This document shows, piece after piece, positions 14,929 to 43,000 of a DNA stretch of 64,000 nt (position 1 is the first letter of the stretch; each line of letters starts with the position of its first letter). The position numbers and the translations under genes were made by a program. Source of the DNA: Asterias rubens. Lineage: Eukaryota. The notes beneath the pieces are model-generated. The model was not told where the DNA came from. It saw only the letters and a program-made list of their open reading frames with translations, and searched no databases. The DNA lies in NCBI RefSeq assembly GCF_902459465.1, contig NC_047073.1, forward strand, positions 13,268,001 through 13,332,000, written 5' to 3'.

Positions 14929-17900
14929 TCATTTTACATTCTTGAAGATCTTATCAGCAGACTGAAATAAAGAATAATACATAAACATTCAGTTTGGAAC
15001 AACGAAGGAAACGGCACGAGTAATGGTTTATTTTTTTAACACAACTTGGTTTTCATTTGTGTAAAAGACATGTCCAAAATGGTGGCTATGGCTTAAGCTG
15101 GATCACCATGTCAACATGCATTGATGTATAAGCTTCCCTTAGCAACAGCTAGAGCCAAAGCTACTAATTTGTACTCAATTTGAGCCAGGGCTCGAATTTG
15201 GGGAAAAAATCCACAAGACCGCAGGGCTTGTTGCTCAGAATTTTTACTGGACCGGAAGATTTTTTACAAGACCAAAATTTTATTAGGAAAACAAAAAGTT
15301 CACACGATAGAACAGCAGGCCTTTTTAATCCCTTAGGAGGCTTTTTTTTTGCTGTGAAACCCAATCAATAAAGTTCCATATACCTACTTCACGTCATTCT
15401 CGTCGCCTCAAAAAATAAATTCTGATTTGACAGGCAAATCACCAACAAAACACTGCAACGCGCAGCATTCATAAGAAGATCGTCATAAAAAGAACCAAAA
15501 ATTTGACAGCAGTAGTCAGAAGCTCATCACTGTTGGTAGCCATACTTAGCAAGACGTTTGGCAACAAGACCTTACTTTTAATCCATGCAACACAGGGATG
15601 TGTGGTATTGCAACCAGACCTTCTTAATGCAAATTCAACACTCCTTTGTAAGGTATCAGACTTTACACATGGTCAGTGGTAAACAAACATCGCTGTACTA
15701 AGGTGTGCCGCCGCGCCGGGTACCAACACATCACTCCCTCGTCCCCGCTCGCTCACTCCCCGGGTGCATAAACATAAATGGTTTGAGACTAGATGTACAA
15801 GGTGTGGGCATGAGTAAACTGAATGGAAAACTTGTATGCAGCCTGATGAACGTGAAAAAAGGACGGATTGACGTTCCGCAGGCAGGCTCAGAACACTGAT
15901 TTGACGACAAGTAAAACAAAAACTTTTATTTTAAATGAGATTGAAAAACATTTTTTAATGAAAGATAATATATTTCATATAATTATTTGTAATAGTAACT
16001 ATATTAGTATGCATACAAAAAACACAAGACCGCTGGACTTGTTCGGCATAAAGTTTACTGGACCGAAGCTAAAATCACTGGCCTCGGGCCTGCGGTCCAG
16101 CGTGAAACTCGAACCCTGTTGACCTACATGTACACATGGTGTAGGCTCCAATAGTAGACTTTTCATGCCTCGTAAATAACAGTTTTCTGATTTGTCCCAA
16201 GGGAAAAATAAACAAATCTGGAGAACAGACTGAAATAGGAAAAAATGTCATGCCTGCTTAAATGTACCCCAGCCTGAGAGGCTTTCATTATAATACACAA
16301 ATTTAACCTGAATACTCACACAATGATCCACACAGTGGATGAAGTCAAACAGCTCCTGCGTACATGTCTCTTCTGTTTTACTACGACTAGAGACCCTATC
16401 GGTGCAGACCGCCAGCTCTTCCTTCAATGCTTCACAGTGATGACCCTCACGACACTCCTCCAATATGCCATCTCTGGGATCCTGGTAGGGGTACGACAAA
16501 GCAAAATGCAGAATACATGAAATCATGGCATTATTTATATATAAAAGCAGGACAGTACATTTAGAACTGAGAAGTCTCCCGAACATCCAATAAATCTACT
16601 CCGCAGTAGTAGAATAAAGAACAAACTCTACCTGGCAAGTAGATACACACATGGAGTTACCACAATCCAAAAATATATATTAATACCTCACCATGCAATG
16701 CCTCAAATCCTACAAAGTCAACTTGTTTTCAATAACCGCAATTACTATGCCATAGATCATGTGGGCCAATCGGCGCCATCAATCGATTGACAAAAAAAAT
16801 TACAATTGACAACATACGCAGTTTATGATTTAGTTACTAATTCCGGATCCAACGTGGCATCAACATGGTACAATACTATTTGTAACATGTTGGATATGTT
16901 CCGACCATCCCAACTTGACATTCATCCATCTTCCCAAAGTTGAGACGCCCCAATTTTAACATTCAAGTTTGGACCAGTCACAACAACTTTAGGAACAGAT
17001 TTCAATAAAACCCTCTATTTCTAATCTCACCACAAGATCTTCTTCATCCTCCTCCTCCTCTTCTTCTTCTTCCTCCTGCAAAAAAAAAAATCAAAATAAA
17101 AGAATGATTTAACTTGACACTCTGTGTCTCTGGTAATATTTATGTCCCTCCTGTTCATTCATATCGGATTTTGAATAATACTCAACCGGGGAATGTGGGT
17201 TGCACTGCAGTACCTAGTGTAGTAGTAGCTACTACTAAAAAGCGGGGCATTTTTATTTACGAGTATTAATTATGTCACCCAGACCGCACTTGTCATGTAG
17301 AGATGTTTTAAAAATGACTTCACAAAACAGACGTAAACTTAATGGCACTCTCGCCGCAGTAATCGGAGTAAATCAGTCTGACTTGTACAAATTCAATTTT
17401 TTTTTTTTGCAATTGATCAAATCGTTATTAATATTATTAATTACTAAGTTGTTGTGTGAGGGAACTCGTGAGCGAGTGGAGGGAACAAGACACAGTTTTT
17501 CAACGCATTGACCAGTGAGCGAACAGCTTCATTTCAAGAGAGGGCGCTGTTGAACCCACACAGAGATAGGATTGCGTGCGCCACCGTGCATGACAACATC
17601 ACTGCCTACCAATATTGTGAATCACAATCAGGTGCAGTGCTCAATCTCGTTAACGCTATGAATATGATAATTTAGTTATTATATGAACACAAGCCTTCCA
17701 TTCCAAGGAAAAGAAAGTTATTTATGAGAATGTAACTTGTGAACAACTGGAAAACATTGCTGTATTATTCAAAACATATTTCCCACCATATTTCCCAAGC
17801 TGTATCCCACCATCCAGCAACTTTTTAATTTGTGATGAAATTTGTCTGCTCGTCGTATTTCGTAACAAGTCAAATGAGATATTGCTTTTGATAAAAATGA

Positions 17901-20756: not shown

Positions 20757-23700
20757 TTATCGGATGCTTTGTCTGAGTTTGAGTGTACCCGACATGGCTT
20801 TTGGGTCTCGGGGCCCCTTCTTTGCGGATTTCCCGTGAGTTTCACTCTGGAAACACTTCCATAGCCTCAGAGTCTCATCTCCTGCAGCTGTAGCCACTGT
20901 CGACCCATCAGGACTCATGCACATGTGAAGAATACGTGACGTATGACCTACAAGGATAAAAAGGGTGGACAAATAATTACCTTTTGCTCAAAAGAAACAA
21001 TTGGGATATGGGTAAAACAAAACGTTATTCTTCATCCCCAATGCAAATTTAACATTAAATCCTGGTTCATACAAATTGTTGACGTCACAGGGCTGTTTTC
21101 GCAGTGAATGTTTTGTAAAAAGTTGAACACAAGTCAACTGATGCAAATTGTTCATTGCGATTACTGAGGTAACAGTTTGTGTTACATTCACATGAAGTGT
21201 GAACCACGCTTCATTTGTTGTGGTACCAACTGCAAAAGATTTTAGTATTCTAATGCCTTTAGCTAGCCTAGGCAATCCCGGTGGTCTAGTGGAAAGACAT
21301 GCTCTAGAATGGCAAAGGTTTTGGGTTTGAATCCCACCCGTGAAATTTGCCAACATATTTTTTTTTTCTTTTTTCACAGGACTCAGGAAAAGCACCCAGT
21401 ATACAGTGGTTTACACATCAGTGTATGGGTAAAACAAAATAATATTTGAAAACATGTGTTTGCATAGCTTAAAGGTTAGCTTTTCATAAAAGTGAATCCT
21501 CAGAGAAATCACAATTGTAAAAGTTAACAGGGCAACATTTTCTTCATTTAGTTTGTTTACGCTTTATTAAGCAGCTCTATAGAATTTCAACCAGGTCACA
21601 AAGAACCTTGCTTTCGTTTAAAAAGTTGTATGACGATTTCTAAGCCCAAAATTTAATTAATGAAGGGGGACAGAAATTTTCCTTTGGCCAATAGCTTTGG
21701 AGGAAAATTTAAATTTGTATTGGAAATTTGCAATTGCTGTGGGTTCCGTGGGCTATTTCGAGACCGTCATTTTCTGATGAATAGACCTACCGAGGAGTTC
21801 AGCTGTTCTTGTCATTGCTGGGTACTTCCAGATGACGAGTTGATTCTGAGCGTAGCCGTGGGCCGACACCAACTCCCGATACTCTTTGGACCAAAGAACT
21901 GAACAGACCTATCACAATGAAAACAAAATGTAAACAAATCATTAGTTGTAAATAAATAATAATGGAGACGGTGACACTCCTGGTGCAGAGAATAAAATGA
22001 CATTTGAGATATATACAAATAAACAGAAGACGGTAACAACATATTTTTCAAAAGAGACGAGTTTTGAGGGTTTATTGGGAGGTAGAAAGTCTCCTTTAAA
22101 TCAGTTTGATGGGTATTTTTAATAATTCAATCATCTGAAGGAATAACCTCAAATACAATGTACGTGACTCTTGTCAAAACAAGATCGCTGGAACTGGCCA
22201 TAATTACCTCTTTATATCATGAACAGCAAAACAAAGAAACAAACAGCAGAAAAAGAGTATCAGGATTTCAGAATGTACTCTTTATTGACGATGTGACCTA
22301 TGTTTACATTAAAACTGCCCTCTGTTGAAAAAACACCGTATACGTCATGTTTCGCCGGGCAAAAAGACTTGTAGTCATGGTAAGATTGCATACACTTTTT
22401 AGCTGGCTGCCAAAACACAAAGGTTTTGCCCGGCGGTATGCGCGCGAATCGTGTTATGGTTGCCGTGTGACGTCAGAGGTCGCATCGTCTATAAGCGGAA
22501 CCTTGTTATAACAGTACTCTTTATAATGAGTGTTGACTGTGTATAACAAACAAATAAATATGAAAAAATAAAATACCTGTGATTTAGTGTCGATGCTGTT
22601 CAGGCAGTTGCCGTTGCTGACATTCCAGAAGCGCAGGAATCTATCTGCAGTGCCACCCCCACTCACTAGTACACTTGGCTGCCAGGGACACCACGCTAGA
22701 GCCTAGAGAGAAAAAAAAACCACAAACAGAGTCAGATTTTAATTTTAATTTGAATGTGAACTTCATTTCATATGTAGGATTTGAAAATTTGCAGGGTGGA
22801 AATACGACACCATGTAATGACTATCTCCGAGTTAGGGTGGTTCTGAAAAGAAAAAAAAAACGTTGGTTTCAACTCGACGTTTAGATCAGTATGCTCTGAT
22901 CGTCTTCTGGAGAACGCTATTTCATTTCATATGTCACTTCAGAAATAGTCCCAATAAACAGTAAGCCCATATGCATATAATGTGCATTATCGGCGGGCAA
23001 AACATTTTGGGTGAAATGAGAGTCAAAGCAACACTCAGCAAACCAGTTTGATAATTGTTGACACCCCGATAAAGTAAGAGTTAGGAGACCATGTGCATTT
23101 AAGGTGGTAAATCATTTGTTTTTGAAAACGTTGGATTGCTTAAATTCTATGTAAATGTAGATGTACTAAAAAATATTAATTTCAAAAGGTGGTCGCTTTT
23201 TTAAAATATCCTTGAAAATCCGGAATGGATGTTATTGTAGGTACAGTTTCCCTTTTACAAACTACATTACTTTGAAGTGAAATGTTTCTCAAATTGCTAA
23301 ATACTATCAAACACTGCTGTAGGCTTTTATTGCCATTAATTTTCAAGATTCCCTTTAAATGATAGCACTGACCTTAACGGCAGCTTGGTGCTGGGTGAAT
23401 GTATGAATCGCTTTAGATGGGTCTCCGTGTGTTGCTGAAGGCCAGATGTTTAAGAGGTTGTCATTTCCCCCACTGGCAAGGTACCGACCATCCGGAGCCC
23501 ACTTGAGCCCACACACCTCTTGGGTATGCCCAGCTAGGCTAGCTATCTGATGGTTCTGGACTCGTACATCATGGTGGTGGATAGCTCCTGATCGTGAACC
23601 ACTGCAGAGATAAATCAATGGTGCATACTTGTAAAATGGGACTTTTAAATGGTACAAAAATGAGATGGGATTAAGTTAACCATAACAACATACGAGACAA

Positions 23701-25215
23701 TTAAAGTCAGGGGCATCATTGAACAAAAAGGAGATCAAATGGAGATGGGCAGGCCACCTGTCAATGGTCCAAGACAACAGGTGGCCCAGACGAATGACAT
23801 AATGGCAGCCAAGAACAGGCAAGAGAAAGAGAGGTTGGTAAAGGGCACCCAATGAGGAAAAAGTTAAACCATTGATACACTTTCAGAAAACAATCAAAAC
23901 AATCAATTATGGTTTTATATAACGGGGGAAGTGGAGGAAGCGACAACTTGATTACTTGTCAATTATTTCTGTAATATTGTGTTTCGTCGGATATCTTAAA
24001 AATGGGAGACTTTGGAACGCTATGTGGCAGAAGACTTACCAAGTAAGTTCCCATTCGTATTTCTAAGCATGCACACTTTAACGAGAACACTGGATTTACC
24101 TGGTATGTCTACTGCCACCTTAGCTCCCAAAAATGTCCCATTGCTCAAGTTTTATTTTAAGTTAAGAGATCTTACCTGCTGAGGATGTAGCTATTCCAGG
24201 CAAGTGAGCCAACTCTAGCAGCATGACCGGTCATGTTCCGTAACCTCTTAGTGGCAGTAACATCCCACAGCTGCAAACGAAAAAAAAAAAAAGGTAACTG
24301 TAACTAGACATTTCGGTTTTGTTAATTTACAAAAACAACATGTTCGTGAGTGATGTCATCAAGTTATGATTGAATCAAGACTTTGGTGTCTACATTTTCC
24401 CTTTTCAATCCAATGTAAACCCAAACGCTACGGCCAGAGAGTGAAATTTTGTAGGGACACCAAGACCAAGTAGGAAACACTTAGCACAAAAACTTGCTAA
24501 ACACAGAAAAATCTTACTTATCAGAAACTTGTTACGAGTTAAAACTCCATAAGCTTTACATTCTTGCAACAGGTGACCTACTCATGCGTTGCATAGCAAA
24601 GAAATATGCTAAGCATTATTTTCTGCTTAACAGCTTTATGAAATTGGACCCAGGGCAACAGAGGCAATGTCCTACGTCCGCCCAAATGGCCGTTCCTAAG
24701 ACAGAAGGACAGTGACAGCTTACCTGAACCTCCCCTGTGCTGGTCCCAACGGCCAGGAAATTGCCTTCCTGTATCCAAGACACGGAGCAGACGTACTCTT
24801 CCTGACCCTCCAGCTGCATGAGGTGATTGATACTACCCGAGCTGGCGTCCCACAGGTACACGTTATTGGCTAAGGCTACGGCGAGATGATTGTTCCTACT
24901 CCAGTCTATCAGATTCAAATCTGCAAATAATAATAATAATAGTGGCGTCTTCTATAGTGTGCATATCCAGGACACTCAGTGACGCTCAAGGAGCTTTAAC
25001 ATATATTTTCCTGCAAGATATGTGGGACTAGGTTTGGATTATGAGACCTACTACTTCTACAAGGTGCTGTAGCGCAATGTGCTGCCAATCAAACCAGGAA
25101 CACCGGGATGACTCCCTTCACAATAAGTGCACTGGGTTCCTCTTACGTGTGTTACACATCTACAGGACCACTGGCTTTATGTCGCATCCGAAGGACAAAG
25201 CATCATATCCGGTGG

Positions 25216-25248
<33 letters not shown>

Positions 25249-27668
25249 TCAAAGTCTTATATAGCGCATGTATCTACCAAACAAGGTACTTAAGGCGCTG
25301 AGTATATACAAACTTTCAGAATAATAGGTTATTGCAGTGATGGATTCTGAGACCCATTTATTTAGCACTGTATAATGGTTTACAAGGTGCTACGGGTGCT
25401 ACGGCGCATACAGCAGCCACCACCAGGAACACCGGGGCGAACCCCTTCGCTTGTCGAAAAGTGCACTGGGTTCTTTTACATGCGTTACACAACACATGGG
25501 ACCAAAAGCTTTACGTTCCATCCGAAGGACGAAGCAATGGTTAAGTGTCTTGCTCAAGGACACAAGTGTCACGGCTCAGGATTCAAACCCACACTCTGCT
25601 GATCAGAACCACCAGAGTTTGAATTTGGTGCTCTTAACTGCTCGGCCACGACACTTCCATTGCCATTGGAATGAATGAATTAATNNNNNNNNNNNNNNNN
25701 NNNNNNNNNNNNNNNNNNNNNNNNNNNNNNNNNNNNNNNNNNNNNNNNNNNNNNNNNNNNNNNNNNNNNNNNNNNNNNNNNNNNNNNNNNNNNNNNNNNN
25801 NNNNNNNNNNNNNTAAATTAACAAATTCTTTTTGGCTTACAGTAATCATCCAGGATATCAGGGGCGTCCAGTATCCTCTCTGGAACCTGTGGAATATGTC
25901 GTATTGACTTCTTGGTTGAACCTGGCGTCTTGGTCTGACTGTACAACACTCTCAAGTTATTCTGGAAACCTGTGGATTGAAAAGTTGGGGTTGGATTTGA
26001 TTATTTACCATGCATTATCAGGAAGCTAGTATTGTTATCAAAGGGGTGGGAATGAGATGTAGGTCACTGGTCACATTTTGGTGCTTCTGTTTCGGTGCAA
26101 TAAACTTGTTCCTTTTTCATTTAAACTCATGCACAAATTACAATATAAGTCGGTATATATTTCACATAAAATAGGTGAGGCTTGTGGTTGTGGTTGTACT
26201 TTGTGTAAATCTCTTTTGAGTAGTGCTTTTAACCGATGGTTCTTTTTGCAACCAACACTACTCAAAAAAGATTTACAAATAGTGCTACCCAAAACCTCAC
26301 CTAAGGTGAAAATCCAAAGAAGACATTTCTTTACCTTCAGGAGCATCTGGGGGTTTACTTTTGTACGATAGGATCTTTGCATTGAGCAATTCTCCGTTGA
26401 GGTTGTCCGACATTTTCTTGCAGTAGTCAATCTTCTGTGGGCTCTGTGTGGCTTGGTTCTCTTGGTTTGTGGAGCAGTTCAGCAGTTTAAAGGCGCCGAC
26501 GTCAAAGTTTGTGCCGCTGCGATTAGGAATGAAGCGATCTCCGACGGGTAACTTGGATGGTGTCTTACCTGAATCGAGAAAAAAATGTGAACGAAGTTTA
26601 GTTAGCAAGCTTGTGATTTTTTTTTGATAGAACTCGGGAAGGTACCGAGTATAACAGTGCACACATCAGTGTAAATTGTAAAACAAATAACATTTTGTTA
26701 AAAGTTCTAAATCCATAAATCAGAAGCAACATCAATGTTCACTTGGTGCTGGCACCCCTTTGAAATGTTCCCCTAGAATTTATTTTGGGGGTCCTTTTGA
26801 AAAATTAAAATGGCTTTGCTTGCTCAAAGTGAATTTCGAAGGTTTTGTCTTGATAATGCTGTTCTTGTGTAGAGCAATTTCTGAGCTTCACCCGTATTTC
26901 ATGGCTCTGGCTTCATGGCTTACCACCGAATTCTGTGCTTGTGATAATCATTTGTTCGCTTAAAACAGGGCAAGCAACAAATTTTCCTCCTGGCCGTGAA
27001 AGCAAAGAATACCAAGTAGTGTGAAGTACACAAGGGAGAGGCAAAAGTTCCTGCTATAACCTGTGCCATACGCTTGATGCAAGCGCGGTGTTTGATCAGC
27101 AGAGTGTGGGTTCGGGTCCCGGTCACGACACTTGCTACGTAAAATTGGGAGGTAGTGGTTTCTGCTCTACCAGCCAGGCTTCAGATTGATGATACCCAAG
27201 CCAACATCCATATGAACTGTAAAGGGGGTAACTTCTGCTTCAGCTCTAGGGGTAGGCAGCATTGGCCTCTAGAATAAAATAATTGTAGCCCACACCTTGA
27301 AGTGGCATTCAGGCCTTGTGTGTCTGCGACTTGCTTAAAAAAAAACTAAAAATTAAAAAACATGTACTGTACAAGTCTTGGTCTTGCAGATTTTGTGTCA
27401 GAAGTGTACCTGGTGTTTTGCTTCTTTTTCCATTTGGAGTCTTTGATTTTGATGGTGTCTTTGAGCTGAACGACTGATTGGACGTCTTCATCGGTGAGAT
27501 GTTTCCAAGACTCTTGTTGAGGCTCTTATTCATGCTCTTGTTCACCGAGGCGTTATTGCACATTGATGTCTCTGATGCCTTGCGTTGCCAGCGCATTGCT
27601 GGACCCCCGATTGGACCATCTAACCTCACAAGGTTGTTGATGTCCGAGTCAAATTTAAACTGGGACAT
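20757..27668 (-). CDS. CDC20: Cell division cycle 20 / fizzy, APC/C co-activator, 525 aa, 9 coding exons
   Basis: Exons 27668-27410, 26568-26335, 25969-25841, 24920-24724, 24270-24176, 23601-23373, 22702-22577, 21908-21791, 20947-20757 (1578 nt, phases consistent). MSQFKFDSD...RWQRK N-terminus, C-box [23 protein letters not shown]40 repeats and C-terminal IR tail. Confidence 0.97.
21275..21445 (+). mobile_element. tRNA-derived SINE, family 4 (CACAGGACTC...TATACAGTG...CACATC body)
   Basis: TGGTCTAGTGG A-box and GGGTTTGAATCCC B-box. Copy at ~42455-42600; body fragments at ~13280-13330, 26630-26690 and 42325-42390. Confidence 0.65.
24925..25212 (-). mobile_element. 5'-truncated Deu/Nin-domain SINE abutting the CDC20 exon 4 acceptor
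   Basis: Minus strand GAACCCAGTGCACTTATTG...CCCGGTGTTCCTGG core, L2-like tail and (ATT)n ending 4 nt before the acceptor CAG. Confidence 0.65.
25216..25654 (-). mobile_element. Full-length tRNA-derived SINE with Deu/Nin-type core and L2-like tail
   Basis: Head GTGTCGTGGCCGAGCAG...GGTTTGAATCC, then GTGTCCTTGAGCAAGACACTTAACC and GTAAAAGAACCCAGTGCACTTTTCG...CCCCGGTGTTCCTGG, then GCGCTATATAAG and a long (ATT)n tail. Confidence 0.75.
25685..25813. other. Assembly gap (129 N) in a CDC20 intron
   Basis: Run of N. Confidence 0.99.
27087..27345 (+). mobile_element. tRNA-derived SINE family 1 copy in CDC20 intron
   Basis: GGTTCGGGTCCC B-box, the same body as 141-427 and an A-tail. Confidence 0.8.
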
Positions 27669-29030: not shown

Positions 29031-29814
29031 CCAATTATTTTCGCAATTTGACAACAGTCAAAGTTCAGGAATGGTTTAGCGCCCGGCCAAAATTTAAACC
29101 TGTGGAGAAAAACCTGAACCCAAAGGTTGATTTTTTTTAAACAGCACTTTACAAGAAATTCTTCTTAGGTTTAGTTCGTTTCAGCATAGTTTCAGGAACC
29201 GTAATCTAGAATTTAGAACTTCATGATTAAGAATAAGCTTGGTTGTTGTGTTGGACCAGGAAGAAGATCTTTTAACTTTTTCATCTATTCTAAAATTTGC
29301 CAAGGCCAAAAAAAATGTAAATACACATTTACAAGACGTGATCACAGTGTATGCAACAGTAATTTTGACTAAACGTGTAGGTCACATTCTTAATATCGTA
29401 TTATTTGTTGCATTTTGATTACCTGTTCAGCAAAAACCTGTCATCTAGACGTCAAAAGAGGATCGGAAGATTGGCTTTTCTTGCATGACCAACGCCGTGT
29501 ATGTGTGTGTGTATGTTTTGTTTATTAAGCGTGGGTTTTAAATGACCCGCGTTTTGATTGGTTCTCTGAGATGCAGGACTCTTGATTGTGATTGGGCCAT
29601 ATGTGAAGTCACGTTAAAACCAGTCTTTATTGTTGTTTACCAGTAAAAGGAACCAATTTTACTCAATAAAACACATTATGAATAAATATACTCATAATTG
29701 TGGATATAAAATAGTATTTTTGTTGTTGCTTTTATGAAGTATTTAAGTTAAATGTTAACGTCAAGTTCAAAATCTCGTTACGTTCGAGATTTACTCAGGC
29801 ATTTCGTATTCAAG

Positions 29815-32800
29815 ATGGCAGCCCCCATCAGAAATTTGACGTGTCAAAACCGTTTTCAATTTATATCTTTCCTATCAATTAACCACTCTATTTTTCTAAT
29901 ATGTACTCTAGTTAATCTTACAAATGGCAATTTCTATTCACACTTTGTCATGGACGGTCAAGGAAGGGAGATTTCCCTGGAGGTTTTTCGGGGAAAGGTG
30001 ATGGATTTTTGTAACTCACGTTCGTTCACGTTGTTATCTAATTCTACCTCCATGGTTATACATGGTTGGAGCATTCCCTGCTTCCATGATGCAGCATGCA
30101 CAGTGCAGTGTTGCACTCGTTGCATTTAATCCCCCCTATTCACCAACCATTTTGCTTGTGTTTGTGCAGTAGACTAATGGATGTAGTGGAATTGTTGTGC
30201 ATGCCAATACCTCAACTTTCAATGACCAGCATGTTTGCTTTGTACGCTAAGCTTGCTTGGGTTGCAAGACAAAACTTCTAATTTAGGATGTGCACACGCT
30301 CTTTTGTTGTATTCTTCTATCATTAGTTTGTCTGCCATTTCTCTATTGTCTGCCATGCCATTACCCCCCCCCCCCGCATAACCTCACCCCCATGCTCAGA
30401 CTAGCCTTGTTGTTTGTGTTAAATTTGCATCCGAAAAAGTGGAAAGGGTCACCAACATTTGTTTGACAATTTTACCCTAAATTAACTAACATTAATTTAA
30501 GGCATTGGACACATATTGTTAATAACTATTAAAACAAATGTTAGCACAAAAATCGTACTTGGTAAGAGTTACGTTGGGAGGTTAATACTAATATGTAGAA
30601 CATTGTGTAGTATTAACGCAGTCTTCGAGAACGAAGTAATTTTTCACGACATTGATTTCAATACCTCAAAATTTGAATTTTAAGTCTTGAAATCGGCATC
30701 TGAAAGCACACAACTTCGCGTGACAAGGGTGTTTTTTCTGTCATTATTATCTCGCAACTTCGACGACCAATTGAGCTTAAACTTTCAATGGTTTGTTATT
30801 TTATTCAATCATCAATGACAATTGCCAATACCCACGGTTCTTTTCAAACCACGGTGTTACCGCAAACCTTTCCAAATCATGATTCCACCATGCAAAGTTT
30901 CAAATTCTACCTATTAAACTGTTTCGATTTGTCCATGTGCACAGCAACTTTCACAAATCACAAAAGTAGTTTGTTCCATCGCGTGCTCAACAACTCGGGT
31001 TTAGACTCGCTGTTCTCAACGTTTATTAGTAATTTGTAAGCATTTTCCAAGTTTATTTTCTGCAAATCTCTTTCCGAGAACCTTTAAGTTGCCTTGAGGA
31101 AATAAAGCAACCCAAACCAAAGAAAATAACCCACAAGGGGTCAACCGGTTGTTTTATTTCTGGCTAAAAAACGGTTTGTAACCTCTTGATGGATGGGAGC
31201 TAGGTTCCGGGTGTCAGGAACTTTGAAGGGGAAAAATGCTCAGTTGAATCAGCATTCAACAGTCAAAAGGAGTGTTAGCCTGATTCAATTTCATCACTTT
31301 AAGCATTATTAATCAAAGAAAAGTTCAGTTTCGTAAAAGCATATCAACAGCTGGTCAATCATTGAATTGTATTAAAACATCATGTGTGGATAGGTTGTAG
31401 AAATTCAAACTGAAGATTTGTCAACATGAAGTTTTGAACGCTTAAAATTAAATAGAATGACTGGAACAAACCTGATACAGAGAAACTAAGTAATGTGCAC
31501 AAATAGCTCAAAGGAAATAAGATTTTCGGGGAGTGGGGAAACTGCACAGAACTCGGCTGCATACTATTGAAACGCCGAGTAGGTTTTTGTTTTTGCTGAA
31601 ATAAGCCAGTAAAACCTCTAATGCAGTAACAGTCTTCATCAATGGTATTTGTTTCTTTATTTACTTGCGTCTAGTTGATTCATAGGCCCATGGAATATAA
31701 TTACAGTTAGACCAAGTTACGATGCATATAGTGGAGAATGAAAGACAATCCTTATTAAGGAAATAAACTTGTATTTATAAGCACCGCAATGACATGCGTT
31801 GAATCGCAATGAAGCTAACTCAACCCAACATGTGATATTCCAATCCACTTGTATTAAAATTGCACACATTTTAATATTTAGAATATAAAACTAATGCGAA
31901 GGAAAGCGAGTACCATTCTAAAGCATCTAAACAAATTGGATGTACATTGTATCCCAAAAACAACACTTCAGCAGCATCCATTGTTTCATTTTTAGTTGAA
32001 CACATTTTATTCGGCCATAAAAGTGCCACTCAAATTTGACGCTAGTTGGTACTGTCCAAAAAGGACTCAGCTAATTTTTGTGTAAAACCTGAAGAGATGT
32101 TGATACCATCTCCGGAGCATTGGTTAATTTCAGGAACGTTTTTAACATGAGTGGTTCAAAACTTTGTATTTTGAACTTTTCTCTGACTAATGCAGGCACA
32201 ACTCGTTATGAATTTTCAGCAGTTTGCAAAATTGTTTTAGAGCTTTGACAAACAAGATTTGTAACACTATTGGTAATTATCAAAGACCAGAATTCTCACT
32301 TGGTATTATATCAAAAATTTGAGCTCAAAGTGGCCGTCGAAGTTGTGTGGTTTCAGATGCTTGATTTCGAAGTTGATGTCTCGAAATCAATTCGATTGTT
32401 TTAGTGAGAAATTACTTCTTTCTCAAAAACTACGTCACTTCAGAAGAAGCTGTTTCTCACAATGTTTTATACTACAGGGATGAGATTGTTCAGACTTTTG
32501 GCTGAATTCAGACTTTTTATGTCAGCCTGGTGAAGAAAATCGGACAATGTTTTGTGGATACTGTTTCCAAAAGCTCCGTGAAATCTCTAACCCCGGGGGT
32601 TACCAAACGGTAGAAATGGCATCATTTCAAAATACCTTTGAATCATTTGTATCCATGATTTCAGACTTTTTCGTTCGTAATGACTCTCACCCCTGATACT
32701 ATTAACAGCTCTCTATACAAGTAAGTTGTTATGCTAACAATTATTTTGAGTAACTACAAATAGTGTCCAGAAGAGCAATGTTTTTATAACCATTCGATTG

Positions 32801-34314
32801 TTGTGATCATTATAATGTGAACTATAACAATAACTTGTGAAAATCTCTCACATCAAAAAGTGGTCGTGTTATGAGATGCCGCCGAAAATCTGGTCCGAAA
32901 ATGTTCATATGCAAAGAATAATAAGTTACATGTATATGTACACAATATGAGAAGCGTTACCGACAGTAATAAATTCTCTTGATCAAATTTTATCTCAAAA
33001 AACAAAGTATCTTTTTACATAGCAACGTTACTTTCGAAGTGAAATGTTTTTAAATGTAAATCCATGTACATGTACTATCGAAAGGCGACAGGCTTTTAAA
33101 GGGCACTGGACACTATTGGTAATTGTCAAAGACCAGTCTTCTGACTTGGTGTATCTCAACATAGATGCATAAAATAACAAACCTGTAAAATTTGAGCACC
33201 AGGTCGTCGAAGTTGCGAGATAATATTGACAGAAAAAAACTGTTGTCAAACGAAGTTGTGTGCTTTTCAGATGCTTGATTTCGTGACCTCAAAATCTAAT
33301 TCTGAGTTCTCGAAATCAAATTCGTGGAATATTACTTGTTTCTCGAAAACTACACGTCAGAGGGAGCCGTTTCTCACAATGTTTTATGCTATCAACAGCA
33401 CCCCATTACTCGTTACCAAGTAAGATGGTATGCAAAAATTATTTTGAGTAATTACCAGTAGTGTCCACTGCATTTAATGTTTGCTTATGTTTGTTTTTCA
33501 CAGCCAGCTCTTGTCGTCAACGTAGCCAGTGAGTGTGGATACACTCAAAACCATTACGAGGACCTGGTGTGGGCAAGTCAACAGCCAGGAATAGATGAAG
33601 AATTACACATTCTAGCATTTCCTTGTAATCAGTTTGGCCAACAGGAGCCGAAGGGTGCCGAGGAAATAATCGCCTTTGCCCGGGAGACTTACGGGGCTAC
33701 CTTCCCCATCTTCGGTAAAATTGACGTGATCGGAGAATACGCTGATCCTGCTTTCAAGTATTTAAGTACGAAGTTCCTTTAAATAATTCATTATCAGTAT
33801 TTGACGGAAATTATCTCTATTTTTATAAGATGCACCAATCATGAAAATAATATGAGCGTACATTCGTTGTTGTTTAACATATGTACATGATTCTTATGTT
33901 TTGTTTAATCAGAACTCTGTCCTAAATTTCGTGGAAACGCGCACTTGGGTCAACTATGAATTGGATTAAATAGTCATAAACTTTGATGTGCACTTAAACA
34001 AGTATTATAAATCAGTCATTGTATCGGGACTCTTTCCAAAATGTCAAAGAAACGGGTACACGAAACTTGGATAATAAGTATCAACCATTTCTTATTTATT
34101 TTTAACAGCTCGGTCATTGTATCGTGTCTCATAATTTTATATAACAGGTGCATCAAGTGGTCGGGAACCGGACTGGAACTTCTGGAAGTATCTGATCGAT
34201 AGGCAGGGGAGGGTTATCGACGCCTGGGGACCAACCACTCAAGTTTCAGAAATATACGACTTTCTACTTGCAGCCACCCAAACCCCACGCCTTGTGAGAA
34301 GAGATGAGTTCTGA
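29815..34314 (+). CDS. GPX7: Cys-type ER glutathione peroxidase GPX7/GPX8-like, 203 aa, 3 exons
   Basis: Exons 29815-29997, 33504-33765, 34148-34314 with consistent phases. Motifs VVNVASECGYT (peroxidatic Cys), LAFPCNQFGQQEP and WNFWKYL, hydrophobic N-terminus, C-terminal RDEF (KDEL-like). Confidence 0.93.
33096..33477. mobile_element. MITE, dominant TTAA/AGG family, ending ~25 nt before the GPX7 exon 2 acceptor
   Basis: TTAA at both ends and family TIRs. Confidence 0.85.
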
Positions 34315-34380
34315 GCAACGGCTATATAACATGTACTGAAAATTGAGCCATATTCTTGCCAGTCAATATTGTTATTCTTA

Positions 34381-34716
34381 CAAGGCAGTGGACACTATTG
34401 GTAATTAGTCAAAATAAATATTATCATAACATCTTTCTTGATTACGAGTAATTGGGAGAGGTTGATAGTGTAAAACATTGTGAGAAACGGCTCCCTCTGA
34501 AAGAAATTAGTTTTCGAGAAAGAAGTTAATTTCCACAAATTTGATTTCGAGACCTCAAGTTAAGAATTTGAGGTCTCGAAATCAAGCATCAAAAAGCACA
34601 CAACTTCGTGTGACAAGGGTATTTTTCTTTCATAATTATCTCGCAACCTCGATGACAGATTGAACTCAAATTTTCACAGGTCTTTGACAATTACCAATAG
34701 TGTCCACTGTCTTTAA
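34381..34716. mobile_element. MITE, dominant family, just downstream of the GPX7 stop
   Basis: AGGCAGTGGACACTATTGG ... CCAATAGTGTCCACTGTCTTTAA. Confidence 0.8.
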
Positions 34717-35380
34717 TTATACATGTTTATTAAACATTTCCTTAACCCTTCAACTGCAAATAGAAAGGACTATACCATTTTTTTTCATACATTTGTTACC
34801 AAAATCACCATTACAAAATCTGCCCTAAAAGTCTGTTTTTAATTTCTTCACTAACATTGCATATGCAAAAAAAAACGTGACAGGTCAAGAGAATTTAAAC
34901 ATCTCCCATAAGTGTTTCCTTGTGACTTGAAGGCTATGCAAAATTGGATTAATAAAGTTGTGATACGAAAATAAAACCACTGTTGAATTCTTTGAGTTTT
35001 TAACAAGGCCAACTGTATAGAAAGGTTTGCGGTAACACCATGCAATGACCATCTCTAAATGAGTTGGTTTCACAACTCGACATAAGAAGACCAGTTTTTT
35101 CGTAAGCGAGCGAAAAAGTGTACAGTCACACAACAAACATATTTTCGATTGATATGATAATTATGTTACATAACCTTGATAATGAATGTTACATGGAATT
35201 TTCCATCCAACGTAAACCAGTCCATTCATTGTGGTATAAGGGGATAATAAAAAAAATAGGTACCTATGTTCAAAAATTGAAATCAAATGACCTTTGAAAC
35301 ATTCAATTCACGTGACCTACAACCATCCTATCAAATGATGCATCCAGCTGGATAGGGACCAATGCATTTCGTTGGTGGTT

Positions 35381-35742
35381 GGCAGTGGACACTATTGGTA
35401 ACTGTCAAAGACTAGCCTTCACAGTATGCATAAAATAACAAACCTGTGAAAATTCGAGCTCAATCGGTTATCGAACTTGCGAGATAATAATGAAAGAAAA
35501 AACACCCTTGCCACACGAAGATGTGTTTTTAGATGGTTGTTTCGAGACCTCAAGTTCTAAATCTCTGGTCTCCAATTCAAATTCGTGGAAAATTACTTCT
35601 TTCTCATAAACTACGTCACCTCAGAGGGAGCCGTTTCTCACAATGTTTTATACAATCAACTTCTCCCCATTACTCGTCACCAATTAAGGTTTTATGCTAA
35701 TAGTTATTTTGAGTAATTACCAATAGTGTCCAATGCCTTTAA
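35381..35742. mobile_element. MITE, dominant family
   Basis: GGCAGTGGACACTATTGG ... CCAATAGTGTCCAATGCCTTTAA. Confidence 0.8.
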
Positions 35743-36231
35743 CAACTGCCATTACAATCACCACCCAACATAAGCATACAATAACAAGCCTGTGAAAACT
35801 TGGGCTCAATCGGTCATCGAATTTGCGAGAAAATGCTGAAAGAAAAAACACCCTTGTTGGACGAATATGTGTGCTTTCAGATTGGAATAAAAGACTTCTA
35901 GCTAGAAATTAACTCTTTCTCAAAAACTACGTTTGTCGTTAGTTCAGAGGGAGTGTTTCCACAATGATTTATACTATCAACAGCTCTCCAATGATCTTTA
36001 CCAAGTCAGTTGTTAAGTTATTTTATGTTCTTGAGTCATTCCCAAACTTGTACCTTCCCTTTAAATTCATCGATATTAAATAATGTAGACTTGACTTGTG
36101 CTGCAATCATCACAGAGAACACCGCCCTCATTGTTTACAGCTCCTACCCTCGGCCGAAATAAAAACCACGAACATGTTGAAGGTTGAAACTGGAATTGTT
36201 GAAGCATGGTTGAAGCAAGTGATTTTTACAA

Positions 36232-36307
36232 GTGCGTAAATGGCAGTATGTGAGCACAGCTGGAAGTATAAATACACAGCTATGCCAACATCTTGCCTTC
36301 TCCACAC
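36232..36307 (-). ncRNA. mir-31: microRNA mir-31 hairpin, copy 1
   Basis: Minus strand 36298-36277 reads AGGCAAGATGTTGGCATAGCTG, the conserved miR-31-5p. Complementary 3p arm CAGCTGTGCTCACATACTGCCA and a pairing basal stem. Confidence 0.93.
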
Positions 36308-36951
36308 TCGAGAAATGAAGAACAGACATCAGCAAACCCAAACATCTTCGAGAAGTCGATGCAGCATCTACAAGAGTATAAATAAAAACAATGAATCTTA
36401 CACTAAAACAGTATACTAGCAGTGTCCCTTCTATATAGTTCTATACAGTTCCCATTAACACTGTAAACCACGCCCTTATTTAAATAACAACCACTTTGAG
36501 GCAAACACTGCTAGGGAAAGTGTATGCCCAATATATTATAGACATTATGCAAATTTCCACAACAAACAATATTACAAATCATGTGCTATTTATGCAGAGC
36601 ACAACTCAAGGCCGAGTACCATTACGCTATATCTATATCTATAAAGTATTTAGAAAATAGTTACTGGTCCTATGTTATTGACCCACACTAAAAATAACTA
36701 CATGTACTTTCTGATGTTATGAAATTGTTGACATGCTTAAAATAATTTCGGTGTCAAAAAATCAAAAACTACAACACCTCAGCAAATAAAATCAGGGAAA
36801 GCAAAGAAAGCTTTCTACCACCATTATCTTCAAACCGTGCCCTTTTATACATCGTCTAATAACGCGACGGTGACGAGGTATATCCAACCACAGAAGCAAC
36901 AGGTGGAATATTGAACTGTCCAATTGTGCCGGGCTCAAGTTGTACGAACAG

Positions 36952-37026
36952 GCATACAAATGGCAATACGTTGGTACAGCTGAATAAGAATAAACCAGCT
37001 ATGCCAACATCTTGCCTTCTGTACAC
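36952..37026 (-). ncRNA. mir-31: microRNA mir-31 hairpin, copy 2
   Basis: Mature 37017-36996 is identical to copy 1. 3p arm CAGCTGTACCAACGTATTGCCA; different loop; basal stem pairs. Confidence 0.93.
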
Positions 37027-37407
37027 TTGCATCTTGAAGAAAAACACATAGCTGAGCACTGCATCTGAAGAGAGAAAGTTTGCTAATAATACTCGAACCA
37101 TTTGCACTGTGCCTCACCATAGCACAAGGGCTTTACTTGGAACATGTGTGTGACGTGTGTGCACTGTGCACGCATCATTCATACCTGCTTTGAAATTCTA
37201 ATGAAGTTACGTAAGACGCATGTTGACACACCTCACTGGCAATAAGCATGAGCAAACAAAAATGGCGGGCAATTCCTCCTCCATGGGGCAACACACGGAA
37301 GTTGAGGCTTCTTTTACATTAGGGGAAGCTTTGATGGCTTCCAAAAGACACTCACTGAAAAAAACCCAGATGGTCTCTTCGAAGTAGGATGGCCCCGAAG
37401 CAAGTAC

Positions 37408-37488
37408 GAGAAACAAAATGGCAGTATGTGAGCACAGCTGAAAGTTGACAACACACAGCTATGCCAACATCTTGCCTCTTTGGCACTC
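37408..37488 (-). ncRNA. mir-31: microRNA mir-31 hairpin, copy 3
   Basis: Mature 37477-37456 is identical. 3p arm matches copy 1; loop and flanks differ. Confidence 0.93.
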
Positions 37489-39773
37489 TAATTTAGCAGG
37501 CAAAATTGCCGAATCAAACTTCACAGTGTGGTCACTGTGTGCATCACTTAGGGCTTCGTAACCACAGCGGGTTGGTATAGTAACAACCCATTAGAAAGCC
37601 CGTTAACTCGTAGATTGATTAGATTTAATTAAGAATGATGGGTGTAGACTTCATAAGGTGCAAGCCTCTATGGTGCAAGCGACTGTTTAACCATAGAGTA
37701 AGGGTTTAACATGTCAATTAGAAGCCATACTATTAGATGTCCATTAGCTTGGAGGCCACTCGGTAAAAAACGAAATATGTTAGAACTGGCCGTTAAAGTG
37801 GAGATACATTGCTCTTGTTTGGAAAGAAAATGGGCACTCTTTCAGGTGTAAATATAAGGCTACAGCATTTGCATCGTGATACCACACACATTACATTCAA
37901 AATAGTTGAGGAAAACCGCTGTCAAACATACATACAAGACAATTTAAGAATGATAATATTTCTGAACATAAAATTTGGCGCACTCCCAAAATTTGGTATT
38001 TCAGCTCAACTGAGCACAAGATATTTTTGTTCATTGGTATAGAAATACGTACCTACAATCAAAAATGGAGTTGTAGTGTTGAAATTAGCCCGTGTGTGAA
38101 TTGACCTTGGTATGGCACTATGATTTTCCACAGTAGAAAAGCTTTCATGGAACGGTTAAAAGGCCGCATATCCACGGCATTTTACCCATGGACCAAAGGT
38201 CTCTTTGCACTGCGATAAAGATAAGCCGGGGTGTGTTTTATGTATACAATACCTCAGGTCGGTTTTAAAACGTTGCGTGGCTTATTTACCTAATTGATTT
38301 GAGTATCGCCACGTTTAGTTCATTCCGGTTAGAGTTAACAATTTATTAATAGCACAGGTCATCAACACACACCTACAATGATCAACAATAACATATTTTT
38401 TTTGACAAAAGATTTTATGTCATCTTTGAAATAAATAATTGACTTGATACATGATTCTACCTGTGGAGGCTACCTCGTGCTCTTGCCTACCTAGTGCCAA
38501 TGATCGTATCCTTCATAGGTGCAATATTCTTCTTCCCCTTTTATCCCACAGGTCGTGGTTCGTGACAATGTACCCCATCCCAAATCGACCCATCCACCCT
38601 TCTCCAACAAGTAAAGATAAGACGTTACGTAACTAACATTTGTACCCATTGCTTGGGTATTGACTGAGGGTATACAAAACGGGGTTGTACCGCAACGATT
38701 GGTTGTGACTAAACGCCATTTTAACAATGCACGTGCGTAAACCATTTCTGAGAATTTTTTAAAATGGCGGGAAAACCACAGCAACGAGCAATGTCATAAT
38801 GGCCGTCTCTAACAACGGAACTTGAACTTTGTGAGAAAACCACAACATTCTTCGAGTGTTTTCATCAATAATTATGCAATTTTTTTTAATAATGCCATTT
38901 TGTATAATTGTTCAATCACACACAAGTTTTTGAAATAGTAACTTTTACCAAAATGAGGCTCGTCTCGCATGATTTTGTCGCACAAAATGTAAAACCTAGA
39001 TTGCAAACTTTGACTGAACTTTTAAAATCATTGAAGAGTAACAAATAATAAAAACTATTTCCTATATCTATAACGCGGTAGGAGTGACCTGCGTATGTTA
39101 TTCCGCTCTATTCATAAGATTTTTTTCAAGGAACACTTACAAAAGACCGAACAATAGGTTATTTTAGATGAATTCATAGGATCCGGTCAGTGAACATGCC
39201 GCTCCACGATGGTGGTTATAAAATAGGTGTAGTTTTACACCGCACGGTGTGTATGTGTAAAAGCATCAAGGTAGAAATAGAAAGATGGAGGTCAACAGAA
39301 AGTCGTCAATGCTTCACATAGCTGAGTTTTGTTAGGTAGTTCGTCATGAATTATTGCAGTTTGTTATAAGATACAGTTATCACTAGCTATACAAAGGAGG
39401 CAATGTTCACTTAAAGTTTGATATATTGACATATAAGCACATGGTTGACAATAAATGATGACTAAGATGACACAATATTACATATAAAATTGTTATTAAT
39501 CTATTATTTATAAATGTTAAGATCAAAAGATCAAATATTCTCCATGATTTAAAAGATGCTAATTTTAAGTAAAATGTGATCCAATTAAAACGGTGTTCGC
39601 CATCAACATTCATATTACCACTTCTCCGTTAAGTATTAGATGTAAAACTTCAGATAAAACATCTACAACAAGCATTGGGATAAGTCGAAACACTTCACAA
39701 GGATAAATGGTACATTGATCCATTGATCATTATTATACATGCATTTCAAAAAAAATACTTAAATCATACTCAC

Positions 39774-40059
39774 TGACGAACATGGGAGAGGTGTCTAGCG
39801 TCTGATCTGGCGGGTGTACTGATGTTGCATGAGTGTTTAGTTGTGTTGTTGTGTCGAGTCGAGGACTAAATGCTGGTAGCAGTTTTGCCAGGTCAAATTT
39901 CGGGCATGCTTGCGTCGACCATCGAAGCATAGGAGTGGTACCCATGTCTGAACCACGCCGGTAATGCAGTGGAGAGCACCCCATACCCACCTTTAAATTG
40001 ACACGGCTGGGTGGCTTTCGATTCCATTTGGCTGGTTTCAACAAGTGAATAGGTGCCAT
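39774..40059 (-). CDS. CDC20: Candidate distal alternative first coding exon of CDC20 / host of the mir-31 cluster
   Basis: ATG 40059 in good context with an upstream in-frame stop. 95 codons + 1 nt, then a consensus donor CA|GTGAGT (phase 1, same as CDC20 coding exon 1). MAPIHLLKPAKWNRK resembles the CDC20 N-terminal API....PARWQRK motif. GC-box GGGGCGGGG near 40323. Confidence 0.45.
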
Positions 40060-43000
40060 GCCATCAGTCACTACTGTGGTTTCCTATTCATGTTGGGCAA
40101 AATGGTGCACGCTCACGATGCTGCATTCCACCGGTCCATTGTTACGTGGTTTGTGTATTATGGGCGTTTTACGTATACGATTGACATTCAAATTACTAAG
40201 CTTTGTGTTTTGTTTGACCCAATGAACAATGTAGAGATGGGTGACGACATCTACGCACTAGGGGTAGATTTAAATAACTTTAGAAGTCTGGTGTCGTCCA
40301 TCCACTCACAGCCGAGCCAAAAGGGGCGGGGTTTAGCTGACCAGTAACAATTGCTAGTGAACCCCAACGTTAATTATCTATCACAGGAATTTCGCCTAAT
40401 CCGGTTTTAGATGCCTTTACGCATAACAATACCACACCAAGTATAGCTTAATAGTATCACCCGGGATACGGCAAACCCCAATGCACAGGCCAATGCTCCA
40501 TGGACTTCAATGCAAACACTCTACTATAGTCCCCTACATGGTTTGTATAGAAAAAGGCTTTAAGACTGGACTTACCAAGCTTTTTTTCCTTTCTTTGGAA
40601 AGCCTTCTTGTGCAATGAAAAAGCTTCACAGGTTGCGTTTGCTTTAGTTTAAGATGGAGGGAAAGAAGAACTAATTGACGGGTGGTGAGGGGAAATGAAG
40701 AGTTTTGTTTTGAGGGGACGCGATTAGGGAGTTATTGAAATGAGTGGTCAATCTGTGCATAGAGCAAGGATCTGTGAGAGTTAAATCTACAGTTAATTTG
40801 TGAAAAACCAGAAAAATGTCACTGCGTGGTTCTTGGTAAAATTAATGAAACCAGTCAGTTAAAATCTTGCTTATACGAAGGAATAATGCAGTTTGCATTA
40901 AGGAAGGATAATAAATGATCAAAAACACTAGTTTTACTCACTGTTGACAAATGGAACCAACTTTTACAACATGTCCTAATATTTATCTGTACTTTAAATA
41001 TATATATATAACTCTTGCTTAGTTATATTGGGCATTTCAGAAAATATGTTTAATTTGAAACGAGGAACACTGTATTTGTTAAGAATACAAGTTTTGTTAT
41101 CATTTTTTAAATATTCCATAGTATTTTCTTCTTCTAAACCCCAGAATTTAAACGGTTGTCATTTATGTCATAGCATTGACAACCCCCGCCAACAGTTTTC
41201 TTCCACTTGCAACTTCGACAACCAATTGAGTTCAAAGTTTCACAGGTTGTGCACATGTGGAGATACATCAAGTGAGAAGTCTGGTCTTTGACAATTATCA
41301 AAGGTGTCTTGTGTCTTTAAAATGTATAATGAATGCGTCACTATGACGACACGCAATTTTGAATTGGCACACCTTCTACGATGCCCAACAATGAGGAGCA
41401 GAGCTGCCTCATGACGACATGATTCAGCAAACGAGAAGGTTGTGAAATGCGCCCAATCTTTGCCAAACGTTTAAGTGGTTGACCCGAAAGAAGATTAACA
41501 GATATACAACAAATTTAAACGAAAAAGGGAAAACATTTTTTTTTTTAAACCAACGACCTCATATAAAAAAATCTTTGCTCAGCCCCAAATTACTTAATTC
41601 GTTTAACACTTTTTTATTCTTCTCCCATTACACCAATATTGTGTTCATGTCTCGTAATCAAGTTATAGGTGAACAAAAAAACGTGGGTCAAGACAAGTTG
41701 GAAACTTCACCGGTCTTAAAACCTTAAAGGTACTGGGGCTCTATTGGTAATTCCTCAAACTAATTTTTAGCATAAAGCTTACTTGGTAACTAGCAATGGA
41801 GAGCTGTTGATAGTATAAACCATTGTGAGAAACGGCTCCCTCTAAAGTAACGTAGCTTTTTTTTAAGTGTAATTAATTATCCCCCAATTAATATTAAAAA
41901 ACTTCGGTCCTGAAACCTTTTATTTGCATCTGAAAGCACACCCATTGTGTAAAAACGGGTGTTTTCTTGCATTACTCTCTTGAACTTCAATGACCAACAG
42001 CCAAACTTTGGACGGATTTGTTAATGCGTTTATTGGGATACCAAGGGTGTCCAGTGCCTTTAAAATGATTGAGCATCAATGAAGGGAACGCGGCATGGAC
42101 TTGTGAAAAGTGGAAACGCCTCTTTAATTTTTCTTTAATTATCCCCCAAAAATACCAGAAGTTGCATCGACTAATAATAAAGAGAAATTACTTTTTTTAA
42201 AGAAGAATAAGAGAAAGAGAGAACAAAAACAACACAAATATTGGTATAATTTTTTTTAAAGGACAAGACTTTCTTCAAAACTGCATGCCTGTTTAAAGGC
42301 ACTTTACTCATTTAATGTCAAAAACAAGCTCTCACTCGGGAATGTACTGAGTATACAGTGCTTACACACATCGGTGATGGGTACAAAATAACATTAACAT
42401 CTCTTTTAATCGTTCCGGTAGCCGCTGCCAAACATAGGATTCGAACTGCTTCAGCTACCGGACACTGCTCTAGAATTGCATGGGTCGTGGGTTCGAATCC
42501 CACCCGAGTAACATGCCTGTGATGGTTTTTTTTTCCCCACAGGACTCGGGAAAGAATACTGAGTACAGTGCTTACACACATCAGTGTATGAGTGAAATAA
42601 TGAGCTCGATCTCACTTGGTGTATCCCAATGCATAAAGTATTATGTAAACATTAATTGGTTGAATTAGTCATCAAAGTTAATGAAAGAAACTAAACCCTC
42701 TACACAAATTTGTGTGATTTCAGAGTGCATGTAAAAGGCCCGAGGCTTGAACTTTTGTACTAAAAATTTTATGAGAAATTACCTCTTAAAAAAAAATCCC
42801 TACGTTACTTCAAAGGGAGTCGTTTTTAAATTTTTAATATTTTTATCAACAGCTCTCCATTGCTCGTACCTAAACATTTTGAGTAACTACCAAATGTGTC
42901 TAGTACCTTTAAGTCATGGCTCATCACAATATTATGACATACTTTATTTTATCAATGCCCCTTTAACACTTCAAGCAACCTCACTTCGTAATGCCCAAAG

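Follow-up and report, generated by a model that had tools for sequence, protein, structure and literature searches.

The miR-449 cluster, a regulator of multiciliated-cell differentiation, presumably lies directly beyond the 3′ end of GPX8, on the opposite strand to that gene, in vertebrates. In the literature it is located in the second intron of CDC20B, and CDC20B and miR-449 are described as lost together in otomorph fishes. In the chromosome-scale assignments of Peterson et al. 2022 (PMC8789304, SuppFile3), the miR-449 genes (Mir-34-P3a-d) belong to chordate linkage group (CLG) L, subgenome 2-alpha, as does Mir-31, and the related Mir-34-P1 and Mir-34-P2 belong to CLG P, 1-alpha, and CLG A, 2-beta, respectively. 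The mir-31 family itself (Rfam RF00661, clan CL00133) is represented among echinoderms by SpmiR-31 of the sea urchin and mir-31 of the starfish Patiria. Here we analysed a 64,000-nucleotide stretch of contig C13 of the starfish Asterias rubens (positions 13,268,001-13,332,000; hereafter the window, in whose coordinates positions are given), where three mir-31 hairpins stand next to CDC20 and GPX7 in the slot and on the strand that the miR-449 triplet presumably has in vertebrates. This agreement is probably a coincidence of two unrelated families on a shared ancient chromosome.

Three tandem mir-31 genes beside CDC20 and GPX7

The gene order in the window is CDC20 (-), a GPX7-like gene (+) and then three microRNA (miRNA) hairpins (-), the latter 1.9-3.2 kb past the GPX stop codon. 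Rfam and Pfam assignments bear out the same order as given, with a spacing of 2-3 kb, in an earlier reading made from the letters alone (the sequence-only reading). At the Rfam gathering threshold, which is 51 bits for mir-31, exactly three miRNA matches were found in the window, all of them to mir-31 (RF00661) on the - strand:

37407-37488, - strand: mir-31 copy A, the 5′-most on this strand; mature 5p strand at 37456-37477; 63.3 bits; folding energy -36.5 kcal/mol, z -3.5
36949-37028, - strand: mir-31 copy B; mature 5p strand at 36996-37017; 62.9 bits; -39.8 kcal/mol, z -5.5
36229-36309, - strand: mir-31 copy C; mature 5p strand at 36277-36298; 64.7 bits; -40.4 kcal/mol, z -6.2

The mature strand AGGCAAGAUGUUGGCAUAGCUG, with the seed GGCAAGA, is identical in the three copies, and a pattern search of the whole genome (417.6 Mb, up to two mismatches) returned these three copies only. 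Read on the + strand, the hairpins fold at -29.1 to -30.9 kcal/mol, about 6-11 kcal/mol weaker than on the - strand, and score 41-47 bits, under the Rfam threshold; we therefore take the - strand as the gene strand. Altogether, the Rfam matches, the identical mature sequence and the stable - strand hairpins confirm the mir-31 identity. The hairpins are ordinary mir-31 genes: their architecture, 22-nt mature 5p strand and seed are the same as in the sea urchin and Patiria members of the family. They differ from the usual arrangement in that Asterias has three tandem copies rather than one. This tandem triplication, which we read as asteroid-wide and which gives three identical mature strands, is worth keeping in its own right.

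Comparison with Patiria miniata revealed the same organization, with CDC20 (-), a GPX7-like gene (+) and three mir-31 hairpins (-) 1.9-2.5 kb past the GPX gene. By their flanks and 3p arms, each copy in one starfish has a single counterpart in the other (A-A, B-B and C-C), with 88% identity over 93 bp between the two copies C, and AGGCAAGAUGUUGGCAUAGCUG is also identical in all three Patiria copies. By this copy-for-copy orthology, the triplication predates the split of the two starfish orders to which Asterias and Patiria belong, and is old within starfish. Within the cluster, the three hairpins are the sole blocks conserved between the two species. Beyond the exons, the hairpins and a short stretch that lies between the start sites of CDC20 and GPX7, conservation is confined to two non-coding blocks upstream (in the - sense) of copy A:

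38171-38322, strand not assigned: conserved non-coding block 1, about 0.7 kb upstream of copy A; 77% identity over 157 bp with Patiria (L014, 18934-19081)
40118-40223, strand not assigned: conserved non-coding block 2, about 2.6 kb upstream of copy A; 81% identity over 109 bp with Patiria (L014, 20965-21073)

Both blocks were considered as additional miRNAs and rejected, as neither forms a hairpin fold (z about 0 for block 1). They are candidates for a promoter or enhancer of the mir-31 primary transcript. Block 1 also carries paired GATA-like motifs and a TATA-like stretch.

We propose that the three hairpins are most likely transcribed from the - strand as a single polycistronic primary transcript, with a promoter that is probably marked by the two conserved blocks at 38.2 and 40.1 kb. 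Cutting by Drosha and Dicer would then yield three doses of one identical miR-31-5p.

Relation of miR-31 to miR-34 and miR-449

The sequence-only reading had suggested that miR-449 may descend from this mir-31 cluster by seed change. Besides the agreement in slot and strand, it pointed to the motifs AGGCA and UAGCUG that miR-31 has in common with miR-449b, a resemblance that proved real against the published sequence (PMC4058022). Bearing on this proposal, Asterias possesses a mir-34 gene of its own. The exact sequence UGGCAGUGUGGUUAGCUGGUUG lies on contig C18 at about position 6,728,039 (L001, 1494-1568, + strand), within a hairpin of -49.1 kcal/mol (z -7.6); the gene is single-copy, and its surroundings are poor in genes, with an exon of POLR2H (Rpb8) about 9.5 kb away. 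It scores 29.9 bits against Rfam RF00456 (E 0.0028), below the gathering score of 53.4, and would therefore be missed by annotation at the gathering threshold. The genome thus holds both ancient bilaterian miRNAs, mir-34 and the mir-31 triplet, on different contigs.

The genome-wide search for mir-34 was a pattern search, which also gave eight non-exact matches. The three of these that were looked at closely, L002 (C5), L007 (C11) and L008 (C13), have neither an Rfam match nor a hairpin fold and were dismissed as chance; the others, L003-L006 and L009, are 2-mismatch matches.

Mature sequences were aligned using the human miRNAs given in PMC4058022, and each alignment was set against 20,000 shuffles:

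Asterias miR-34 with miR-449a: 19/22 matches; 0 of 20,000 shuffles as good (p<5e-5)
Asterias miR-31 with miR-449b: 15/22 matches; p 0.006, the best among several comparisons
Asterias miR-31 with miR-449a: 14/22 matches; p 0.05
Asterias miR-31 with Asterias miR-34: 16/22 matches with four gaps; p 0.04

On these alignments, miR-449 reads as a mir-34 paralogue whose true sequence relative in starfish is the Asterias mir-34. Consistent with this, the Rfam clans differ, mir-31 being placed in CL00133 and mir-34 in CL00087 together with mir-449. In a permissive Rfam scan (E<=5) of the whole window, some other families matched weakly, but neither mir-34 nor mir-449 did. Descent of miR-449 from mir-31 would require a mir-31 copy to converge to 19 of 22 positions with mir-34. 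Because such convergence would be onto a family already separate in the same genome, we reject the proposal. The 14 to 15 matches of miR-31 with miR-449a and miR-449b fall short of the 19 reached by Asterias mir-34, and the claim, extremely improbable in our judgement, can be set aside.

The seed points in the same direction. Like the starfish triplet, the vertebrate miR-449a/b/c cluster (Mir-34-P3) is a tandem array of about three hairpins lying sense to a CDC20-family gene, but its seed is GGCAGUG; on the dominant arm of the starfish hairpins that seed was not found, and GGCAAGA takes its place. The sequence-only reading had also noted the 6-mer GGCAGU, which belongs to the miR-34/449 seed, in the antisense of the first and third copies. 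It is indeed present there, as the + strand of copies A and C reads UGGCAGUAUGUG, but it is not conserved: GGCAGU occurs in three of the six starfish copies (Asterias A and C, and Patiria A), and the other three read GGCAAU. The difference comes down to whether position 6 of the stem, a variable position, holds an A·C mismatch or an A-U pair, and four of the six letters of the antisense GGCAGU are forced by complementarity to miR-31.

The slot beside GPX7/8 and linkage group L

The head-to-head pair of CDC20 (-) and GPX (+) is kept in Patiria, the sea urchin S. purpuratus, the acorn worm Ptychodera flava and the crinoid Antedon mediterranea, and was not seen in Branchiostoma lanceolatum. In the ibis Nipponia nippon it appears as CDC20B (-) and GPX8 (+), on a contig (L031) that stops 1.7 kb beyond GPX8. 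As a microsynteny, the pair is old among deuterostomes and survives in vertebrates as CDC20B/GPX8; it too is worth keeping as a result. The part of the sequence-only reading that equated the two slots stands for the starfish side, while the descent drawn from it is not supported. A eukaryotic contig in the European Nucleotide Archive (ENA) (ERZ21742408 ctg6225l, L013) presents another arrangement, with a GPX7-like gene (+) followed by a convergent CDC20 (-) and with RFX and Las1 nearby; no miRNA was found on it.

To survey the miRNA content of the slot in other animals, we combined a pattern search allowing up to five mismatches with Rfam, reaching 10 kb to either side of GPX7, introns included, in genomes that for the most part exceed the Asterias genome in size. 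Within this reach, neither mir-31 nor mir-34 was found in S. purpuratus, Ptychodera, B. lanceolatum, Antedon, Owenia or Crassostrea. In the crinoid Antedon another gene begins 0.5 kb past GPX7. In addition, 38 metagenome contigs with an exact miR-31 (1.2-24.5 kb in length, at most about 13 kb per contig examined) are all single-copy for it, and no GPX, CDC20 or mir-34 was found near miR-31 on them. A paper on sea-urchin miR-31 (PMC11076791) names no neighbouring gene in its text. Among the invertebrates sampled within 10 kb, the slot downstream of GPX7 is occupied by a miRNA only in starfish, and mir-31 adjoining GPX7-CDC20 was seen only in the two species, Asterias and Patiria.

At the scale of the chromosome, the MTAP exons of Asterias lie at C13:16,078,114-16,079,794, 2.8 Mb from the mir-31 cluster. 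We take MTAP to be the immediate neighbour of MIR31HG/MIR31 at human 9p21. As MTAP and mir-31 are both on C13, this contig looks like the linkage-group-L chromosome, and the chromosome-scale linkage of mir-31 with CDC20/GPX7 is old. We also asked whether contig C18, where mir-34 resides, corresponds to human 1p36 or 11q23: of the genes that presumably mark these two regions, DVL, PGD and ENO were located on C19, PTS on C11 and ZW10 on C5. Because vertebrate mir-31 and miR-449 coexist on one ancestral chromosome, they do not represent alternative occupants that arose through genome duplication. In starfish mir-31 is physically tied to the CDC20/GPX7 pair, and in vertebrates it still shares its ancestral chromosome with miR-449.

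In the explanation that we favour, the agreement between the starfish and vertebrate clusters is coincidental. The Asterias locus lies on the probable equivalent of CLG L, together with CDC20, GPX7, UQCRH and MTAP. In vertebrates, mir-31 would have stayed on that linkage group, away from CDC20B/GPX8, and the cluster beside GPX8 would have arisen by duplication of mir-34 rather than from mir-31. A single positional coincidence of this kind is unremarkable because each genome holds dozens of conserved miRNA loci and a reader is free to notice any such match. Several points weigh against it. Two miRNA clusters in the same slot and on the same strand beside one conserved gene pair are an unusual coincidence, and the similarity of miR-31 to miR-34/449, weak as it is, lies marginally above shuffles. 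In the urchin or the acorn worm, the 10-kb survey would miss a mir-31 gene placed 10-50 kb from GPX7. Moreover, the expression, the strand and the primary-transcript structure of the mir-31 cluster are predicted, and MIR-34 has resisted placement in the pre-duplication chordate genome (PMC8789304), which bears on the origin of the CLG-L copy, miR-449.

The deep conservation of the head-to-head pair, from starfish, urchin, crinoid and acorn worm to the bird CDC20B/GPX8, also suits a reading in which the slot was reused. The deuterostome ancestor would have had mir-31 downstream of GPX7/8, sense to CDC20, and starfish would keep that state; in stem vertebrates mir-31 would have moved elsewhere on the same chromosome, and miR-449, a mir-34 duplicate, would have taken over the same permissive transcription unit, today the 5′ intron of CDC20B. 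The placement of vertebrate Mir-31 and Mir-34-P3 on the same CLG L, 2-alpha, and of starfish MTAP on the chromosome of mir-31 agrees with this, as do the three vertebrate MIR-34 paralogues on three linkage groups, of which at least two must have moved. We nevertheless consider slot reuse unlikely, given that no mir-31 or mir-34 occupies the slot within 10 kb in any of the non-asteroid animals sampled, with another gene starting 0.5 kb after GPX7 in the crinoid, and that neither a CDC20-like coding exon nor a conserved splice donor was found upstream of the starfish cluster. A tblastn search with the N-terminal exons of CDC20 against 34-46.5 kb gave chance matches only (best E 1.9), a result that bears on coding exons rather than on a non-coding first exon, and a protein comparison likewise gave only a chance match (E 5.4). 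A possible splice donor in the 40.1 kb block has no conservation in Patiria. The starfish mir-31 cluster thus appears intergenic, with the CDC20 coding gene ending before GPX7, in contrast to the position of miR-449 in intron 2 of CDC20B.

In a broader form of this idea, linkage group L has had, since ancient times, a site that hosts miRNAs downstream of GPX7/8 and sense to CDC20. It would have carried mir-31 in the deuterostome ancestor and been taken over by miR-449 in stem vertebrates, so that two unrelated families were successively wired to the CDC20 regulatory landscape. If true, which we think decidedly doubtful, it would explain why one MIR-34 paralogue is on CLG L, the chromosome of mir-31. 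The question of where that copy came from lends interest to the GPX7/8 slot as a possible ancestral host of miRNAs.

The sequence-only reading had offered a second account, an ancestral cluster that held both mir-31 and mir-34 and underwent reciprocal loss, starfish losing or moving mir-34 and vertebrates moving mir-31. The shared position of the two families on CLG L, 2-alpha, in vertebrates agrees with it, and the failure to place MIR-34 in the pre-duplication chordate reconstruction leaves room for it, but we found no positive evidence in its favour. No mir-34-like relic was found in the 64 kb window, and the sole Asterias mir-34 is on another contig, C18. Within the starfish cluster only the mir-31 hairpins are conserved, and the upstream blocks do not fold. 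Nor was mir-34 found near GPX7 in the six other invertebrates (10 kb on each side) or on the 38 metagenome contigs carrying mir-31. We therefore judge a two-family ancestral cluster to be quite improbable, and return to the coincidence of unrelated families as the best explanation of the locus.

Neighbouring genes and other features of the window

The genes that frame the cluster are as follows:

29815-34313, + strand: GPX7-like gene, exons 29815-30003, 33498-33770 and 34132-34313; Pfam GSHPx E 1.5e-25
about 20757-27668, - strand: CDC20 gene, read from open reading frames (ORFs), with a CDC20-type N-terminus, box exon, WD40 exons and IR tail
16248-16586, - strand: exon of UQCRH (cytochrome bc1 hinge), a flanking synteny marker; Pfam UCR_hinge E 1.1e-19

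The GPX7-like protein has a Cys active site (ASECGYT) and the C-terminus RDEF, with the stop codon read from the sequence at about 34313. All three exons are matched by the annotated A. rubens 'glutathione peroxidase 7-like' protein (P0126, 203 aa, C-terminal RDEF), and the best named relatives of the window protein are all GPX7. This GPX7-type gene is single-copy in the Asterias genome, the remaining GPX matches carrying an in-frame TGA. CDC20 is assigned through Pfam WD40_CDC20-Fz matches on three exons and exon-by-exon matches in a search of its own genome. The two genes stand head-to-head with an ATG-to-ATG spacing of about 2.1 kb. Between their start codons lies a 28-bp block (29537-29564) with 96% identity to Patiria, possibly a shared element of a bidirectional promoter. 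After the GPX7-like gene, the next gene is an Ig/fn3 receptor starting near 47 kb, leaving an intergenic gap of roughly 12 kb.

The stretch between the GPX7-like gene and the hairpins (34400-36000) is filled by several copies of a SINE-like repeat (cagtggacactattggtaa...), which draws enormous contig depth in all sequencing runs compared. When four sequencing runs were compared with 34300-40200, the matching contigs were dominated by such repeats. Within a CDC20 intron, an Rfam tRNA match at 21275-21345 (+) scores 32.2 bits, just above threshold, and probably represents a repeat derived from a tRNA rather than a gene; at about 25685-25820, also within a CDC20 intron, the sequence is a string of N, either an assembly gap or a mask. 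Inside the downstream Ig/fn3 receptor gene, long ORFs of 294 and 416 aa at 55966-58190 (-) may belong to a retroelement. Finally, two more multi-exon loci of the CDC20/Fizzy family are located at C13:11,975,272-11,980,237, 1.3 Mb from the CDC20 of the window, and at C14:1,461,706-1,463,621; they are probably FZR1 and another paralogue.

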